A program made the translations under genes and the position numbers. The notes beneath the pieces were generated by a model. That model ran no database searches. It worked only from the letters and a program-made list of their open reading frames with translations, and was not told where the DNA came from. From Lepidodermella squamata (lineage: Eukaryota; Animalia; Gastrotricha), in NCBI GenBank assembly GCA_047495785.1, contig JBLDXI010000001.1:62001-126000 (forward strand): 64,000 nucleotides of DNA, in the 5' to 3' direction. Below are positions 29,201-55,470 of the stretch, piece after piece; the stretch's first letter is position 1; the number at the start of each line of letters is the position of its first letter.

Positions 29201-29396
29201 ACGTGATGGCCACCGGTTGAGCGCTTCCGCTTGACACCATCTATTTTAACCGACTTGGGCGCTACTCGGAAGCGCTGACGCAAACGCTGTTTTACGACCC
29301 TAAAGATGGACACATGCTCCGGTTTTACACGATATTCCATTTAATTTTAGGTTATTTTTATTTTAGTTATCAACTCAGTTTCATCAATCTTGATAA

Positions 29397-29944
29397 ATGG
29401 CACATTTTTCTTCTAAAAACTGGTTCGGTGCATCTGTGCTATGTTTGGTAGCATTGGCCGTTGTAGTTTCTGGTGAGTTTGCCATAAAGCCACTGCGATT
29501 AATTATAATATTTAAAAATGCCTTAATTTAGCCCATGTTGACGATCATCAAGACAAGCAAGTGCACAACCGTCAGCGTCGACAGGCCTGGCTGCCGCGTA
29601 TCGGCCGCCGAACCACTTTAGTTTTGCCACGAACTGGTCGGCCGGAGGATGAGGTTTTCACCGAGTCTTTCGACAACACGATCCGCCAAGCTCTCCGTGA
29701 CTTCGCCAGCCAGCAACCCGCTAATGATGACTGCGGTTCGTTTGTTTCCAACCCTATTACTGATCAATTTTTAACCTCATAAATCATAGACCTGAAAGCC
29801 AGTAAGACTAGCAAGCGCGCCGACCGAAACCCGCCGTCAGTGATGATGCGTCTCGGCAAGCGTTCTGCGCCATGCAAGCGATCTGGATCCAGTGAGGCGG
29901 AGGCTCTCGATGCTCTGAAGCGGCTGGGAATTCGCTTGCTCTAA
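29397..29944 (+). CDS. Neuropeptide precursor (PRXamide/CAPA-like layout), 144 aa
   Basis: Exons 29397-29472, 29532-29735 and 29790-29944. Signal peptide MAHFSSKNWFGASVLCLVALAVVVSA, then RQRR-QAWLPRI-GRR-TTLVLPRT-GR, a spacer, and KR-ADRNPPSVMMRL-GKR. AATAAA at 30313. Confidence 0.85.
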
Positions 29945-30346: not shown

Positions 30347-30720
30347 TCAGGTAGGAGCTGGTTTGCGTAGCGTCCAAATACACCTAAAAAGCAAGCATTT
30401 AACCAACTTCAATAGGGCAATGGTATAGTGAACTCACGTCTGGCCCACGCCTGACATTGCGACGATTCGATAGCCCAAAGCGTCGAGCCGGTCAAGAACA
30501 ATTCGAGGGGTCAAAGGACTTTCATAATGAGAGCTGAATTAATGGTAAAATGTAATGAAAAAGCCATCTTAATAGACGATACGTACAAATTATTTCCCGT
30601 CTCGGTAATCAATGCCGCATCGAGTTGCTTCATCAGTTCGGGATCTGAACCTGCATCTCCGCAGGTTGTAGGGCCAATCTCAAGCCGAATTCTCGTGCTG
30701 ATGATAACATGCGATGCCAT
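30347..30720 (-). CDS. GCHFR: GTP cyclohydrolase I feedback regulatory protein, 88 aa
   Basis: Exons 30720-30587, 30533-30438 and 30383-30347 give MASHVIISTRIRLEIGPTTCGDAGSDPELMKQL...GNNF...PRIVLDRLDALGYRIVAMSGVGQTCIWTL, matching GFRP end to end. Confidence 0.93.
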
Positions 30721-30923
30721 AGTTATAAGAAGAGTTTTATTCTAGTTGAGAAACCCACACAGCTATGTTCATGTCATGTTTAGAATCGCAGCATGGCATA
30801 ACACGGTTCGCGCTCTTCCAACAAAACGTAATACATGAGGATGAAAACAAGTTGCGTGACGGCAACACTTGTATTTTATTGTATATCTTTTTTCTAAAAA
30901 AGCAGCAACAACACAGACTTTCT

Positions 30924-32192
30924 CTATAAGGATATCATGCGCACGGCGTATTCGCGGTGCGATTTTCCGTTCTGTTCCCGGTAACGGCTAGCACTGGGCA
31001 CGCGGTTCTGCGCCGCCGCCAGCGAGCCTTCCACCAGCGACAGCAGCTTATCACAGCTGGCCGAGTCACGCGCCCGTTGGTCCGCCAGCGCCAGCAGTTT
31101 TTCGATCGCGCCGGTGAGTCGCGCCGCCGCGTCGCTATCCGGTTCGGACTCTTGCGTTTGAGCAAGTTTCAGGAAATTCGCGTCCACCACAGCCTGCACC
31201 CATGTCATCACGTTTCGCTCATCTGAAAACGAAAAACGAACAGACATAAAATTCAAGTTATAGAATTTTGAAAGGTTAAATATTTGCCCCCAAAAATTGA
31301 GGTTCCAGCTTCAAATTTATAGCGCACTAGCACCCAATTTTTCCAAATCTTTGAAAATTCGGCTTATCTTTACTTGATTGATACTGATACTGAGGGATTT
31401 ATTATTTTAGCTTGGCTAGTTATAAACCTTTCCACTGTTGGCTTCCAAGACTTCTGAAAACAATCAAATCCTGATTCAAGAAATCAATACTGGAAATCGA
31501 TATCGGCTGTGACCTTCGATAGAGCAAATTACACGGAAATTACAAGTGAGACCTATTGCTTAGGATTAATAATGGCATTAATAATAAAATCAAGAAGAGG
31601 CGAAACTCCATTCATTAGGAAAATCTACGGCTGAAATCTCAAATAGTATGCTGGAAAGTGTGCGGATTCGCCCAACGCCCAATACTGAATTGACTAATAA
31701 GAAAAACTAACTCGTAGCTTCATCCGAAATGGCACATAAAATTGTGACGGCATGTTCCATCAAGTTGACACAGTCTTCGACGTTTGCCGACCGACGGAGA
31801 CAGGAGATTGCACTAGATATATTGATGGCACGTGATAGAATGGCTGTGGCAAGTTCAGCGTCGTTTTTCCGCAGGGCAACAACAACGGCTTCGATGAGTA
31901 GCTGGTCGTCGATTTCGAACCCGCTCTCAATTATTTTTCGCACCAGTTTCAAATCGGCTTTCGTGATAGCGAGGCTCATCAGTTCAGCAATAGCTATGAA
32001 AGGCACCTGACCAGCTTCGAGACATTGCAGCAACGCAGCGCTCGGCCATTCACCATTAGCCTCCTTAAAACGCGCGATTTGCCGCGAAACCTCCGGCCAT
32101 CGCGAGCCGTTCGCATGGCCGTCGAGCTTGCCTTCAGACAGCGAGCGTTTCCTCGCCTGACGTAACAGGTCGGCCAGCGACTGGGTCGTCAT
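30924..32192 (-). CDS. NOL11 (Utp8-like) C-terminal-domain protein, 259 aa
   Basis: Exons 32192-31712 and 31222-30924 (intron gttagt...tttcag). VMTWVQAVVDANF and terminal YAVRMISL resemble the NOL11 motifs WxxxLLDAHF and C-terminal YSIEVLEL. Confidence 0.6.
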
Positions 32193-32570
32193 TTTTTCAG
32201 TTAAAAATCAACGACTACAAATAATAACAAGTTCAAAACTCGATAATACGTGTTCAAAGTGGCGTATTTTACTGATTTAATTTACTTCGGATTTATTTCA
32301 TATCACGAAACCAGCTAAATAACCACTGTAGCCAACGATATTCGCAGACTCCAGAGTAACTCGATTACTAAATCAGCCGCGTAAAAAACTAGCCAAAAGA
32401 ACAACGATTTTTGTAAGGTTCCATCATACATTATAGTACTAGGTAGGGCGGGTATTTAACGGTGGCAGATTTCACTCGAGTCTCATCGTTATGTATAACT
32501 ATTATCATTATTTTACGGCGTCGAGTTCGTCAACTCAATTTATTAAAATCGGTCACTCGCAGGCCTGCGA

Positions 32571-33107
32571 CTACTTGAAGGTGGTGGCACCAAAGCCGAC
32601 GCCAAACGCAACCGCAATGGCAAAGAGCGTCCAGTAGGTCCTGAACAGCTCTTTGCGGCCGAGAAGATAACCGTAATCCTGCCCGACATGGCGCAAGGCG
32701 TTGGCGAAGTGCAAGCCGAACGGGAAAGCGATGCCGAACTTGACGACGTTAGTGAATAGAGGGTGGAGGCTGGACAGCAACAGGCTGGCCTGGTTGAACC
32801 AGTCGGGCCAGACGAGGCTGAGACCACCGAAGCCGGTTATAAAGACGGCCATGTAGCACCCGGTGACGCGGTGCATCAGCGACATGAACATATGCGTCTC
32901 CATCTTATAGACCGTCAAATGCGGGGCAATCGGGCGCGGAGATGCAGCAACGCGTTCGTAGTGCTGACGCAGCTCTTCCTTCGCGAGGCGCTGAGCCTGC
33001 TGTTGCAGGGTCGACGTCGGGGGAGCGGCGATGACTGCCCGGCTCATGTGGAACGAACGCGCAAGGCTCGCGATCGAAGCGCCTGATCGGCACGAAAGCG
33101 ACAGCAT
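32571..33107 (-). CDS. SDHC: Succinate dehydrogenase cytochrome b560 subunit
   Basis: Intronless 178 aa with a mitochondrial-type N-terminus, RPIAPHLTVYK, SLMHRVTG and HFANALRH. Confidence 0.93.
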   Translation of the reverse strand: MLSLSCRSGASIASLARSFHMSRAVIAAPPTSTLQQQAQRLAKEELRQHYERVAASPRPIAPHLTVYKMETHMFMSLMHRVTGCYMAVFITGFGGLSLVWPDWFNQASLLLSSLHPLFTNVVKFGIAFPFGLHFANALRHVGQDYGYLLGRKELFRTYWTLFAIAVAFGVGFGATTFK

Positions 33108-33413
33108 TGTTAAAAACGCAATAAGTACCTAGAAAATCAATAAAAAAATCCACATTAATAACCATCACAAACGTAGTTGCTTTTTCTTCTATTTCAAGTT
33201 GTAGGTATTTCGTTTCTTTTTGTTGCGAATATTTTTCTCAAACAAGACCCGGAATGTGAGACCACTCGAGTATAAAACGTCGACTTGAAATAATAACAAC
33301 AAGTGTTATAGCTATGAAACAAGACATTTTGCGCGACAATAAATTAATAGAGTGATGTTCAATTTTCATTTATAACAAGGAAGAGTACGTTCGTACGTGC
33401 ACCAGTTTCGTCG

Positions 33414-33495
33414 CAACCACTCAAGCGCACCACTGGCCTAATGAGTATGTGAATAAGGCTGACTGTGTTGACTAGGCCAATGGCGCTTGAGGTTG
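33414..33495. other. Stable imperfect hairpin in the PLEKHA8-SDHC spacer
   Basis: caaccactcaagcgcaccactggccta pairs with taggccaatggcgcttgaggttg (about 22 bp with two small bulges and one mismatch) around a ~32-nt loop. Confidence 0.6.
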
Positions 33496-33725
33496 ACTCA
33501 CATGCATAAAGGATCTACCCGTTTCAAGTTATCAGAGCAAATCTCACAAAATGTACAAAAATTGCAGAAGTCGGGGTATGGAGCTGTGTTTTCAAAAAAC
33601 AAAGACAACCACTGCGATGACACATTCCAAGAGAAAAAAAATATTGGGAATGGAGACGATCGTCGACAAAACACGGTCTATGAAAGCGATGTGAGAAATT
33701 TTCTTGTTATATAGGAAATAATGGG

Positions 33726-35347
33726 CTACAATTTCTTCGATAGACCGGTTTTGTCCAGGTAACGGCCTAGCGCATCAAGCACTTCGCGAAGACCTGTTAC
33801 GTAATGCGAAATATCCTCACGTATGTCATCGATATCACAGTTTTCGGTACCGCCAATGCTGGTCAAAAATTGGGTCGGCTTAACCGGCAACGCTTGAAGC
33901 GCCAGCGAGAACACAGTCCGAGCCATCAGACCGTGGAAAGCTCGCAGGGTCTTGCCGTACGCATCAGAAGCACATTGACGCGCATCCGTGCTGGCGGGAT
34001 CGGCTAAATATTTCAAGAAAAGCGCGATGAACTCCATGCCTCGGGTCAGCCAAACGAGGCCAACGCTGGCTGATGGATCTGTTGTCGACTTCCCTGCCGC
34101 AATTTCAATGGCGACCAACGCCTGGATGGTGCATTCCTCCGCCTTAATTTTCTTCGATGCATCGTATTTATTGAGGGCGGCTTCGATTTTCGAAATATTT
34201 CCAGCAACGTCCGAACGGACGGGCGACAACACGCTGGTCTTGAACCGATCGAGGATGGTCAGAATGCTGCGAGCCGCTTCCAGAAAAACCAGGACTGACA
34301 TATCACCATCAGGCTGGATGATTTCGATGTCGGAGAAGGTGTGACCTTCGAGTTCGGTCAACTCGCTGCGAAACTGGTACTTCTTCGGCACGATGGCCTT
34401 TGACGTGACTGGCGTTTCAGAGGCCCTCCGCTCCGACTGCTCTTTCGGCGTGCTATTCTCCGAATTGTGACCATCGTCGATGCTTTGAGTGTCGCTTTTC
34501 GGAGTCAGTGGCAACTTGCCATCGTGCAAAGCAAGACCGAGGGTACTGTTGAAATAGCTGATCCTTTAGTTTCAAGTGAAAAAAAGCGGTAACTGAAGCT
34601 AAAGCAAGCAACACGCGGGGGTGCGGGACTTACTGCGAATTGGAGTCGTCGACCGGGGCGGCTACGGCATCGATTGGCAAATCGTTTACACTCATTGCAT
34701 CGAGATACTTTGCCGGTGCTGGGGTGGTCGCGGGAGAGACGACGAGGTGCGCCTCGCTGGGGCCGTTGAAGTTGGCAACAGACGAGGTCAGCAATAAACA
34801 CTCGTCCACTGATCGAGCCAGGACGTGAGCAGTCGTCACCAGCATTGCTGCATAAATCAAAGAACAAAATTTGTCAACGAAATGTAAGGCCTATAAAAAG
34901 CGTACCTAGCGAATTTTGAGCAGCAGCCTTGTCGTCATCTCGAGACAGTGCTAATTGAGCTTCGCTGGCTTGTTGCAAGATTAGGTCCATGTAGAGACGC
35001 ACCTCGGATCGCCGCGCTTTGACAGCGTCGGCCAGGTCGGCCTCAGTCGACCGCCGTTTTCCGACAAGTTTCGACGAGCCAAGAACTTTCAACCACGCCG
35101 ATCTGTCCCTGTCGCTATAGGCCTTCAAACTGTAATGTTGTTCGCCAGGAATGACAATGTCTAAGCGTTTCATATCGTTTTGATGAACAATTATTTCGCA
35201 AAGAGCGAGATTGACTGAGCCACGGCAGCCATTACGCGTGTCGTCCTTCGAGTTAAAGTACGATAGAGTTCCGTCATCGTTCAGTACGAACCAGCGGGGT
35301 TGCCAGCCAGACATGTAATTCGTCCATTTCAAAAGGACACCCTCCAT
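33726..35347 (-). CDS. PLEKHA8: FAPP2/PLEKHA8 (PH domain + glycolipid transfer protein domain)
   Basis: Exons 35347-34906, 34847-34634 and 34545-33726. PH domain MEGVLLKWTNYMSGWQPRWFVL; GLTP domain SPVRSDVAGNISKI...GLVWLTRGMEF...AYGKTLRAFHG. Confidence 0.92.
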
Positions 35348-35783
35348 TATTGCGTGGTCAAAATAATTAACAGAAAAAAAAGCTAATAAAAAATGTTCTA
35401 AAATAACATTAAATTAGAAAGCTATCGTTCCACCAGCGACTGAAAATCCCCGCAACGATTCGAATATACAATTTAAAAATCTAAATAAAAAAAACAGCAG
35501 ATATAATTATTGTGGTCATTTACACGTTTTACTAAAAAGAAAAGGCAAGGCGCTTAACGCACCGTCAAACAAGAACGCAGCCTTTATTGCAGACGATTAT
35601 TTATAGAATCATCGGTTGCCGTGCTGATGAGCAACTCAAGAGGACAGCCAAAACGAAGAAATGAAATCAATCAGCTTTTGCCGTGCGGTTTTGTATCAGT
35701 AACGTTGATTATGACGATGACAGGTATACATAAGAAAACGCTATACACCTATGATATTTACGACTCGAGCCAGATTCAGCAAG

Positions 35784-37321
<1,538 letters not shown>

Positions 37322-37408
37322 CTATCTATAGAATTTTTCAAAAAATCAATCGGTGCTATTCATAGGTAAATATTGCACATAGAATATAAGAAGTATATAG
37401 AATTTAAT

Positions 37409-38749
37409 TCAGTTGACCAAGTAATTGGCAGTAAGCTTTTTTTGTGCAAGCTCATAGCTGTAAGTGGTAAAAAATAGTGTTTTCTCGTTGATAACAGTAT
37501 TTGAGAGCAACTTCAGCCTGTTGGAATTCTTCTTAGCAGCCAAGAGATTGACTTCGACCGCGCAATCTCTTTCAACAACGACGCAAACAATTGTACCAAA
37601 AGGTCGGAAGAAAATTGGCCTGCTGATGTGATTTAGAGGCGAGTCGACAACAAAGTAATTGGTGGAACTGAGACTAAGCGGCCGGTGACCAATCAAAAAT
37701 TGAAAAAATCCACCGCTCTCTTCAGGGTAAATTAAGAACACAAAGAAAGAAGACGAGAAGGCAAAAGTGGTGTACTCAGGTGTTCGCATCCATTTTCCAG
37801 GTAGCACCAGGTTCTCTTTTAGGCTTGAGTTTTCTATGGGGCTGAATTCGGACGTAACATATAAGCGGTTCATGCACGACCCGTCCGTGTCAGGATAAGC
37901 GCACAAGGCGAAATTACCGTCAGCAAGCAGTATCTGATAATCAGAATATTCTGATGCAATTTCCAACGACGAAAATCGGACAATTGCGGTTCCGTAACTA
38001 TCACTGTCATGACAGGAACCCCGAAACGTGTTAATGATTGCGAATATTTCCGACGTTGTAGGGTGCGTGAACAAAGAAGCTCGTTTAGCAGAAGACAAGA
38101 ATGTGCTGTTTTCAACGATAAATTCTTTCTTGGTCCAGTGCAAGCTCACGTTAAACACCATTGTATGGAAGATGAAAAGGCATGACGTAACATCAGTGCG
38201 ATACGGATGCTGCAGTATACAAGGTGGTCCAGCGTACTCAACAGGAAACCAGCTTGTTTCATCGTCCATCCATCTTAATGTCCATGCTTGAATATCTCCT
38301 GATGCAACGTTGATCACCTTGAGATCTGATGATTCAGAGGCATTGTAACCGGTGGGGATAAATAAGAAGCTACCCACGACGAACCAATGTTTTGCTCTCA
38401 AATCAAAAACATCTGAAACTGGTAGGTACTGTGAAAGTTCAGTGATCGTGAGCGATGGAGGAGATGAACAGCATCCACATGATTCATAAAACAGTTTAAC
38501 GATAGCTTCATCCCGGAGTGATGAGCTAAGGTCAGCCAAATAAGAATTACCAGGAGCAGCTATCTCTTGAAGGAACTCTACTGAAATATCATTCTTCACA
38601 ATAATCTTCCAGCCGCCAGATGACAAAAACGTTTCCACGGCCAATTTGAAAACGTTGCATACACCCTTAAACCGCAGGATATCAGGGTAAGCAAGGTGTT
38701 TGATTATACGCTCTAAAACATCATATGGAAGGCACGCAAGGTCCTTCAT
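37409..38749 (-). CDS. F-box protein, lineage-specific, intronless, 446 aa
   Basis: N-terminal F-box LACLPYDVLERIIKHLAYPDILRFKGVCNVF, followed by a beta-strand-rich region I do not recognise. Confidence 0.8.
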   Translation of the reverse strand: MKDLACLPYDVLERIIKHLAYPDILRFKGVCNVFKLAVETFLSSGGWKIIVKNDISVEFLQEIAAPGNSYLADLSSSLRDEAIVKLFYESCGCCSSPPSLTITELSQYLPVSDVFDLRAKHWFVVGSFLFIPTGYNASESSDLKVINVASGDIQAWTLRWMDDETSWFPVEYAGPPCILQHPYRTDVTSCLFIFHTMVFNVSLHWTKKEFIVENSTFLSSAKRASLFTHPTTSEIFAIINTFRGSCHDSDSYGTAIVRFSSLEIASEYSDYQILLADGNFALCAYPDTDGSCMNRLYVTSEFSPIENSSLKENLVLPGKWMRTPEYTTFAFSSSFFVFLIYPEESGGFFQFLIGHRPLSLSSTNYFVVDSPLNHISRPIFFRPFGTIVCVVVERDCAVEVNLLAAKKNSNRLKLLSNTVINEKTLFFTTYSYELAQKKLTANYLVN

Positions 38750-54276: not shown

Positions 54277-55470
54277 ATGAAGGAAAACAAAGCTGTTGAT
54301 GACATATTGGGTTTACTACACGAATGGGATCAAACATCGAAGGACAGAAGGAAAGCTATTTGCGTCGATTTCACAAAATCTTACAATGGAAAAACTGCTC
54401 CGGAGCTTGAATCATCCCTCGCTCAAGCTGCTAGTTTGTTATTAGCTCGTTTCACAGCTTATCTGCGCATTTCCTACATGCACAATCCCAGCGTACCAGA
54501 TCTGATAAATGCTATTGGTGTGTTTCTGAAAGCAGCTGGTGGAGGAGAATATGTGCGAGAGTTTGTTGAAGTTGGTGGAGTTCTCACACTAATAGAAATC
54601 GTCTGCCTACGCCAAGCGGCTGAAAATCACAAATCGGGGGCTCTACATCTATTATATGTGCTGGCTAACTCAGGTCGCAATTATAAGGAGATGATCTGCG
54701 ATGCTTATGGTGTACGAGCAGCGGCGGAATGTCTCGCTCAAGCTCACGAGGATGAAACTCAAGAGAATGCTCGCTTGTTACTTACAACTCTTGCTGATGG
54801 AAATCCGAAATATACCGAACAAGTTTACAGCGCTCTCGTTGCGTTACTTGGCTCGCACAATGCGCGGGCCCAGCACCTCGCCGCCGCTTCCCTAAGACAT
54901 TTGCAGAGTCGAGTGAGCACACTTCATCCTTCTTTAATCCAAGCGACTTTGAATTTGCTAGCGAGCCCTTCTCTGGACGTTCAAACTGAAGCTACGTTTT
55001 TAGTGAAAATGATAGCCAGCCGACCAGATGCCTGTGCATCTATCTTGAGTGGAGTTGTTGGCCTTCTGACGCCAGCTATTCAAATGTCATCGAAAAATCC
55101 GCCAACCTCAATAATAGTCCCACCTCGACCCTGTGACTTGCAGCAAGCCGCTGCTGCAAAAGTCATCCGAACTTTGGCTGAAGAGTCTTCTGAGTTCAGT
55201 GAAGCTTTCTTGCAACTGAATGTAGTTCGCGGTCTTCTCGTAACTATCGGAAACATGGCACATCCGGATGCTCAACGCAAAGCAGCTTTAACTTTGGCAT
55301 TTTTCGTAAGAATGTTTCCTGCCGTTGACGAGGATGTTCGAGAGGCTATGGGCCCCGTGGTTTATGCTGCCTTCATGGCTGACCCTGAAGGTCTTTACAA
55401 CCGCATTACACCCCTGCAAGCCGACGCCCTTGTTCACAACCAAGTCAAACAAAAATTAGCCTTAAAGTGA
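54277..55470 (+). CDS. ARMH1: Armadillo-like helical domain-containing protein 1 (C1orf228)
   Basis: Intronless 397 aa. LHEWD, GKTAPELE, AASLLLARFTAYLRISY, EFVEVGGVLTL, ANSGRNYKEMICDAYGVR and GNPKY all resemble ARMH1. Confidence 0.88.
   Translation: MKENKAVDDILGLLHEWDQTSKDRRKAICVDFTKSYNGKTAPELESSLAQAASLLLARFTAYLRISYMHNPSVPDLINAIGVFLKAAGGGEYVREFVEVGGVLTLIEIVCLRQAAENHKSGALHLLYVLANSGRNYKEMICDAYGVRAAAECLAQAHEDETQENARLLLTTLADGNPKYTEQVYSALVALLGSHNARAQHLAAASLRHLQSRVSTLHPSLIQATLNLLASPSLDVQTEATFLVKMIASRPDACASILSGVVGLLTPAIQMSSKNPPTSIIVPPRPCDLQQAAAAKVIRTLAEESSEFSEAFLQLNVVRGLLVTIGNMAHPDAQRKAALTLAFFVRMFPAVDEDVREAMGPVVYAAFMADPEGLYNRITPLQADALVHNQVKQKLALK

Follow-up and report, generated by a model that had tools for sequence, protein, structure and literature searches.

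A neuropeptide precursor gene lies hidden in three short exons on the forward strand of a 64,000-nucleotide stretch of the Lepidodermella squamata genome (the window), and this gene is probably the gastrotrich representative of the spiralian myomodulin-PRXamide precursors (myomodulin-2, or Aplysia MMG2-type). The gene itself is real and its peptides are under constraint. Its family membership is probable, judged from short motifs and from architecture, both of which are open to convergence. A mixture of PRXamide and MRLamide peptides is already a known hallmark of myomodulin-2 precursors in molluscs, annelids and nemerteans, and the gene is probably the first such precursor from a gastrotrich: the sequence compilation of the one broad survey that included Gastrotricha contains no gastrotrich myomodulin. 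A literature search for the exact peptides returned nothing relevant.

A compact gene in three exons

When joined, the three exons give 435 nt of open frame on the plus strand, 144 codons and a stop (Table 1), spliced at junctions 29472/29532 and 29735/29790 across two GT-AG introns, with an in-frame TAA immediately 5' of the ATG at 29397. Lists of open reading frames break the gene up, and in that of the window it appears solely as pieces of 44, 73 and 34 aa. The first-pass annotation had proposed three spliced exons that such lists do not reveal; its translations and junctions hold, and an orthologue has the same introns. Neither exon 2 nor exon 3 has a second copy or a paralogue (E <= 10) elsewhere in the 121-Mb genome. 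All sequence comparisons were made with the exons taken one by one.

Table 1. Position of exons, introns, candidate acceptors and peptide units of the precursor gene in the window.
Feature	Position	Strand	Description
Candidate spliced-leader acceptors	29365..29378	+	Unpaired TAG ending 29366 and CAG ending 29378, 30 and 18 nt 5' of the ATG
Exon 1	29397..29472	+	ATG and signal peptide; 25 codons, then position 1 of an Ala codon; reads MAHFSSKNWFGASVLCLVALAVVVS
Intron 1	29473..29531	+	59 nt, phase 1, GTGAGT...TTTAG
Exon 2	29532..29735	+	Propeptide, both PRX units, acidic spacer, first Cys; contains ...HNRQRRQAWLPRIGRRTTLVLPRTGRPEDEV...NDDC
RQRR	29570..29581	+	R-x-R-R convertase site 5' of peptide 1; RHRR in L003
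QAWLPRI-G-RR	29582..29611	+	Predicted heptapeptide PRXamide, (p)QAWLPRI-amide; same residues in L003/L004, with silent changes in the codons
TTLVLPRT-G-R(-P)	29612..29641	+	Possible TTLVLPRT-amide by monobasic R-x-x-R cleavage; exon 2 translation
First Cys of conserved pair	29732..29734	+	Exon 2 translation; kept in L003
Intron 2	29736..29789	+	54 nt, phase 1, GTTCGT...CATAG
Exon 3	29790..29944	+	MMRL unit, second Cys, C-terminal tail, stop codon TAA; reads LKASKTSKRADRNPPSVMMRLGKRSAPCKRSG...GIRLL*
KR-ADRNPPSVMMRL-G-KR	29813..29863	+	Predicted ADRNPPSVMMRL-amide, myomodulin-like; L003 has KR-DGKNPPQVMMRL-GKR
Second Cys	29873..29875	+	Within the conserved block GKRSAPCK; exon 3 translation; kept in L003
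Dibasic site and C-terminal xGIR[LM] tail (KR-LGIRLL)	29918..29941	+	No Gly, hence unamidated; RR-YGIRM in L003

Two candidate spliced-leader acceptors lie just upstream of the start codon, and the orthologue on the metagenome contig L003 has an AG 17 nt 5' of its ATG. The nematode SL1 leader was not found in the genome, and an Rfam scan of the window gave no matches; a nematode source for the DNA was considered and rejected.

A distant orthologue establishes the gene

A HMMER search with exon 2 against 1.84 billion representative proteins recovered one orthologue, P0001 (E 1.8e-19), which is a mis-called 95-aa ORF on L003, a metagenome contig in ENA; a second contig, L004, is near-identical. 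A word-indexed protein search, sized to admit the 144-aa product, returned P0001 alone and no full-length or transcript-derived product, a JGI metagenome scan gave no further orthologues, Pfam had no family match and the ESM Atlas was blank. Read by eye and checked by script, the L003 gene has the same three exons, with 405 nt in frame. Its exon 1 consists of the ATG and a predicted 18-codon signal peptide, and the Ala codon that follows is split by an intron of 64 nt; its second intron, also of 64 nt, falls inside the Asp codon after DDC. Both introns thus sit at identical codons and in phase 1 in the two species, with the sequence of intron 1 diverged to 37 identical positions in 64.

The exons themselves evolve in a very different manner. 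Exon 2 shares 65% amino acid identity with L003 at a dN/dS of 0.11 and a pS of 0.71, and exon 3 shares 59% at a dN/dS of 0.14; at a pS of 0.71-0.73 silent sites have reached saturation, which places the two species far apart. In the stretch RxRRQAWLPRIGRRTTLVLPRTGRPE, 25 of 26 residues are identical and 17 of the 26 codons differ, and the KR...NPPxVMMRLGKRSAPCK block is conserved with 16 of 22 codons different. The spacers and the signal peptide diverge. Since silent sites are saturated while dN/dS stays low, and since the peptide block is near-identical despite so many codon changes, the gene must be real and its peptides constrained. In fact, peptides that are fixed, spacers and introns that drift and synteny that is kept are the pattern of a functional prohormone gene, one which antisense frames cannot produce.

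We also considered that there might be no gene at all, only three ORF pieces with peptide-like motifs brought together by chance. In favor of chance, the protein searches turned up neither an annotation nor a protein derived from a transcript, and Pfam gave no match. Against it stand the low dN/dS at saturated silent divergence and the second species, in which both introns keep their place and phase but not their sequence, and gene order is retained. This explanation is effectively refuted.

Gene order is conserved on the 3' side, where four downstream minus-strand genes (window 30449-33038, the last being SDHC, Sdh_cyt) follow in the same order and orientation on L003. These four genes are convergent with the peptide gene and overlap an operon candidate of the first-pass annotation (30347-38749). 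Upstream of the peptide gene, L003 (593-1126) and L004 (451-1683) carry one or two carbohydrate sulfotransferase (PF03567) genes. No counterpart was found in the window, so synteny breaks just 5' of the peptide gene. Elsewhere in the window, at 54277-55470 on the plus strand, lies an intronless 397-aa ARMH1/DUF5578 homologue. Its identity is 76% to a metagenome protein in ENA and 44% to vertebrate ARMH1, and no closer named relative was found. That the best named matches are vertebrate, at 44%, indicates that the lineage is poorly sampled.

Peptide units and predicted processing

The first-pass annotation had listed a signal peptide, an RQRR site, QAWLPRI-GRR, TTLVLPRT-GR, an acidic spacer and KR-ADRNPPSVMMRL-GKR, and all of these can be read from the exon translations. 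Exon 1 has the features of a signal peptide: one Lys within the first 8 residues, an 11-residue hydrophobic core of mean Kyte-Doolittle 3.5 and a predicted c-region V-S-A followed by His, in a layout that has its equivalent in the orthologue. The propeptide HVDDHQDKQVHN stands directly before RQRR in exon 2.

We envision that the signal peptide would be removed, probably after Ala26, and that proprotein convertases would then cut at RQRR, GRR, KR and GKR, with the monobasic RTGR as a possible further site. After trimming of the basic residues by a carboxypeptidase, PHM/PAL would turn the C-terminal Gly (three of which are conserved) into an amide, and the N-terminal Gln of the first peptide would cyclise. 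This would leave (p)QAWLPRI-amide and (ADR)NPPSVMMRL-amide as mature peptides, with TTLVLPRT-amide as a possible third.

It is uncertain whether TTLVLPRTa is released. Its R-T-G-R obeys the monobasic R-x-x-R rule, and monobasic PRxG-R sites are usual in published myomodulin-2 precursors, but Pro at P1' is unfavourable. Doubt over this cleavage had been raised in the first-pass annotation, and the Pro does argue against release; GRPE is conserved in the orthologue. The 12 residues TTLVLPRTGRPE of the second PRX stretch are identical in L003, and such perfect conservation means that the stretch matters, whatever its final form. The MRLamide unit begins with a conserved [RK]-N-P-P, and a further cut at the conserved R/K before N-P-P may yield a 9-mer, NPPSVMMRL-amide.

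Genes for such processing enzymes are present in the same genome. Convertase P-domains number at least 10, and the best match to the PHM-type Cu2_monooxygen domain (E 2e-39), which lies at C12:759231-759629 within an open frame of 603 aa, probably marks the actual amidating enzyme. PF01082 (PHM/DBH-type copper monooxygenase) has 39 matches in the genome, about 25 of them within 0.37 Mb of contig C13 (about 1.99-2.36 Mb), in what looks like an unusual tandem expansion.

Two Cys had been noted on either side of the third peptide, and both are indeed there and conserved in L003. The pair brackets the MMRL unit together with its cleavage sites and, after processing, would link the spacer peptide to the C-terminal peptide. 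The xGIR[LM] tail is without Gly in both species (L003 2690-2707); it is maybe a decayed second myomodulin-like unit or an unamidated C-terminal peptide.

Could the product be a Cys-bridged small secreted protein instead, or a non-neuronal peptide (e.g. glandular, adhesive or defensive), whose disulfide-linked propeptide is the functional part and whose basic sites go unused? Conservation of the Cys pair with its flanking SAPCK block would fit, as would that of the unamidated C-terminal tail and of the uncleavable-looking GRPE. However, conservation is highest at the units flanked by Gly and basic residues and lower in the spacers, which is typical of a prohormone, and all three Gly-plus-basic amidation signals are conserved. 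We therefore regard this explanation as very unlikely, and a neuropeptide precursor of the myomodulin-PRXamide type as the better account.

Likeness to myomodulin-2 precursors

Precursors with both peptide classes are well documented. De Oliveira et al. 2019 describe [LM]R[LM]amides together with PRXamides on the myomodulin precursors of molluscs, brachiopods, nemerteans and annelids, the gastropod myomodulin-1 and flatworm genes being exceptions without the mixture of RL/RMamides and PRXamides (PMC6425005). Lophotrochozoan myomodulin precursors normally bear RL/RMamide and PRXamide peptides according to Thiel et al. 2021 (PMC8557429), and Ahn et al. 2020 likewise report both classes (PMC7749107). 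Thus, because published lophotrochozoan precursors already carry both, the combination found here is the known myomodulin-2/MMG2 signature and no new hybrid. The first-pass annotation had taken a PRXamide precursor with a myomodulin-like slot for a new combination, and this part of its reading has to be given up.

Several features of the myomodulin-2/MMG2 type can be found in the gene. A small secreted precursor with a signal peptide is present, as seen from the composition of exon 1 and from the orthologue. An [LMV]R[LM]-Gly-basic unit is present as ...VMMRL-GKR in the window and in L003/L004, and so is a PRX unit of 7-8 residues that starts with Gln after RR (RQRR-QAWLPRI-GRR). An N-terminal myomodulin doublet before the PRX units (RxRR-GGLSMLRL-GR-GLQMLRL-GKR or an equivalent) is absent from exon 2. 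This doublet is common in the family, not defining, and gastropod myomodulin-1 and flatworm mpl also differ. A phmmer search with exon 2 gave no myomodulin match at E <= 0.001; short-peptide precursors rarely score significantly.

Secreted precursors of this type hold xxM[LM]R[LM]-Gly and short PRX-Gly units together, as this gene does, and the resemblance extends to single peptides. A first PRX unit of the form R(R)-Q-x-x-x-P-R-[YIV]-G-[KR] recurs in the published set (Supplementary Note S3): RRQPPLPRYGR in Aplysia, Deroceras and chitons, RQVPLPRYGK in bivalves, RQPHFPRIGK in the nemertean Tubulanus and RQVTYPRVGK in Lineus (PMC6425005). The first PRX unit of the gastrotrich gene, RR-QAWLPRI-G, is a Gln heptapeptide like RR-QPPLPRY-G (Aplysia, Deroceras) and R-QPHFPRI-G (Tubulanus), and its LPRIamide ending is shared with AVALPRIa, which is made from Aplysia MMG2 (PMC7749107). 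A lone Arg comes after the further PRX units of myomodulin-2 precursors (PRIGRF, PRLGRF, PRGGRY; PMC6425005), as it does after the second PRX unit here. The MMRLamide ending recurs in myomodulin-2 of the scaphopod Antalis (GGLSMMRL-G, NLGMMRL-G and ALPMMRL-G; PMC6425005), in line with the earlier description of the third peptide as myomodulin-like.

The gene also departs from myomodulin-2 precursors in several ways. Its one MRLamide unit, of 12 residues against the usual 7-8, comes after the PRX units, and the N-terminal doublet is missing. Its PRX units are directly adjacent, and the second ends in PRT followed by R-P. The conserved Cys pair is absent from the published members compared, a conserved unamidated tail is a further difference, and at 144 aa the precursor is shorter than the about 200-400 aa of myomodulin-2.

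Likeness to NmU-type PRXamide precursors

Tandem peptides ending in P-R-X-amide are also found in insect capa/hugin/ETH, C. elegans capa-1/nlp-44 and mollusc pleurin/sCAP precursors, and by analogy the PRXamides of this gene would be expected to signal, as theirs do, via the NmU/pyrokinin receptor family. Could the gene belong to that CAPA/pyrokinin/pleurin/sCAP lineage and have gained its MRLamide-ending peptide independently, with no orthology to myomodulin genes? Its two PRX-Gly units in tandem are consistent with such an origin, and the sole non-orthologue HMMER match of exon 2 is a shrimp precursor with FxPRL repeats (pyrokinin-like; E 7.6e-4); moreover, the MMRL peptide is present once and is longer than canonical myomodulins. 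Yet the peptides are shorter than those of the NmU-type precursors and have no FxPRL, FPRV, YxPR[IV] or YLAFPRM core. The CAPA/pyrokinin/ETH cores FxPRLamide, FPRVamide and KxxKxxPRxamide are absent, the ends being WLPRI and VLPRT with no aromatic residue suitably at -5 or -4, and neither the pleurin 14-15-mer xFYTxxxxxxYPR[IV]a nor the sCAP 9-mer xxYLAFPRMa is present (by eye against Table 1 of PMC7749107). Furthermore, capa/hugin/ETH, capa-1/nlp-44, pleurin and sCAP precursors have no MRLamide peptide, whereas this gene has one, and its PRX peptides match the MMG2-type Gln-start heptapeptide and LPRIa, alongside an M[LM]RLamide as in MMG2. An origin in the CAPA/pyrokinin lineage is therefore unlikely. 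Of the first-pass interpretation, the hidden secreted PRXamide/myomodulin-like precursor stands, and its framing as a CAPA/ETH/pleurin-type hybrid does not, as the CAPA, pleurin and sCAP cores are absent.

SIFamide is a 12-mer with R-[KN]-P-P, and a C. elegans nlp-44 peptide may end in MARV, a point given no weight here. A SIFamide-like reading of ADRNPPSVMMRLa was dropped because its C-terminal, receptor-binding end is unlike that of SIFamide.

Predicted signalling

Processing, amidation, receptors and neuronal expression of this precursor are what we infer by analogy, chiefly from molluscs. The PRXamides would act on a GPCR of the NmU/PRXamide type and the MRLamide on one of the myomodulin/myosuppressin type, and the two classes would serve as co-released neuromodulators. 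In a slug, the NmU/PRXamide receptor is activated by QPPLPRYa, QPPVPRYa and AVPRPRIa; activation requires a C-terminal PRX-amide and a length of >= 5 residues but not the N-terminal Gln (PMC7749107). In Aplysia, PRXa-R1 and PRXa-R2 were deorphanised by screening MMG2-derived peptides, pleurins and SCPs; both respond to pQPPLPRYa (MMG2-pDPb), and LC-MS/MS detected QPPLPRYa as well as pQPPLPRYa (bioRxiv 10.64898/2026.07.28.741146). The genome studied here has > 100 7tm_1 matches, and the three best full-length 7tm_1 frames, compared with the PDB, included no NmU-type receptor, being of aminergic type or without a strong match.

Evolutionary meaning

Gastrotricha has been placed as sister to Platyhelminthes (PMC11660948). 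The planarian precursors mpl-1 and mpl-2 (Smed) are likewise short, with a few xxLMRL/LMRM-Gly-KR units whose MRLamide end is close to MMRLamide. They hold AVRLMRL/M-G units alone, and flatworm precursors are without PRXamide units (PMC6425005), whereas the gastrotrich gene has them. This suggests that the linkage of the two peptide classes is older than the gastrotrich-flatworm lineage and that the PRX half was lost in flatworms.

A fuller reading is quite possible, and we put it forward tentatively. The gene would then be the first myomodulin-PRXamide precursor of Gastrotricha, the MRLamide/PRXamide linkage (myosuppressin-type and NmU-type, respectively) would predate the split between Rouphozoa (gastrotrichs plus flatworms) and trochozoans, flatworms would have lost the PRX half, and both the disulfide loop around the MRLamide and the strictly conserved PRT-Gly-Arg-Pro unit would be new to the family. 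If this is true, the PRT-Gly-Arg-Pro unit may give a new ligand.

The gene reveals no new kind of signalling system, and its evolutionary value is modest. Even so, a compact gene with one copy of each peptide, found in what is reported to be the sister group of flatworms, is of help in dating the linkage of the two peptide classes. Gastrotrich neuropeptides are almost unstudied, and the predicted peptides, made synthetically, would give three defined ligands with which to deorphanise receptors of the NmU/PRXamide and myomodulin types in this emerging model.
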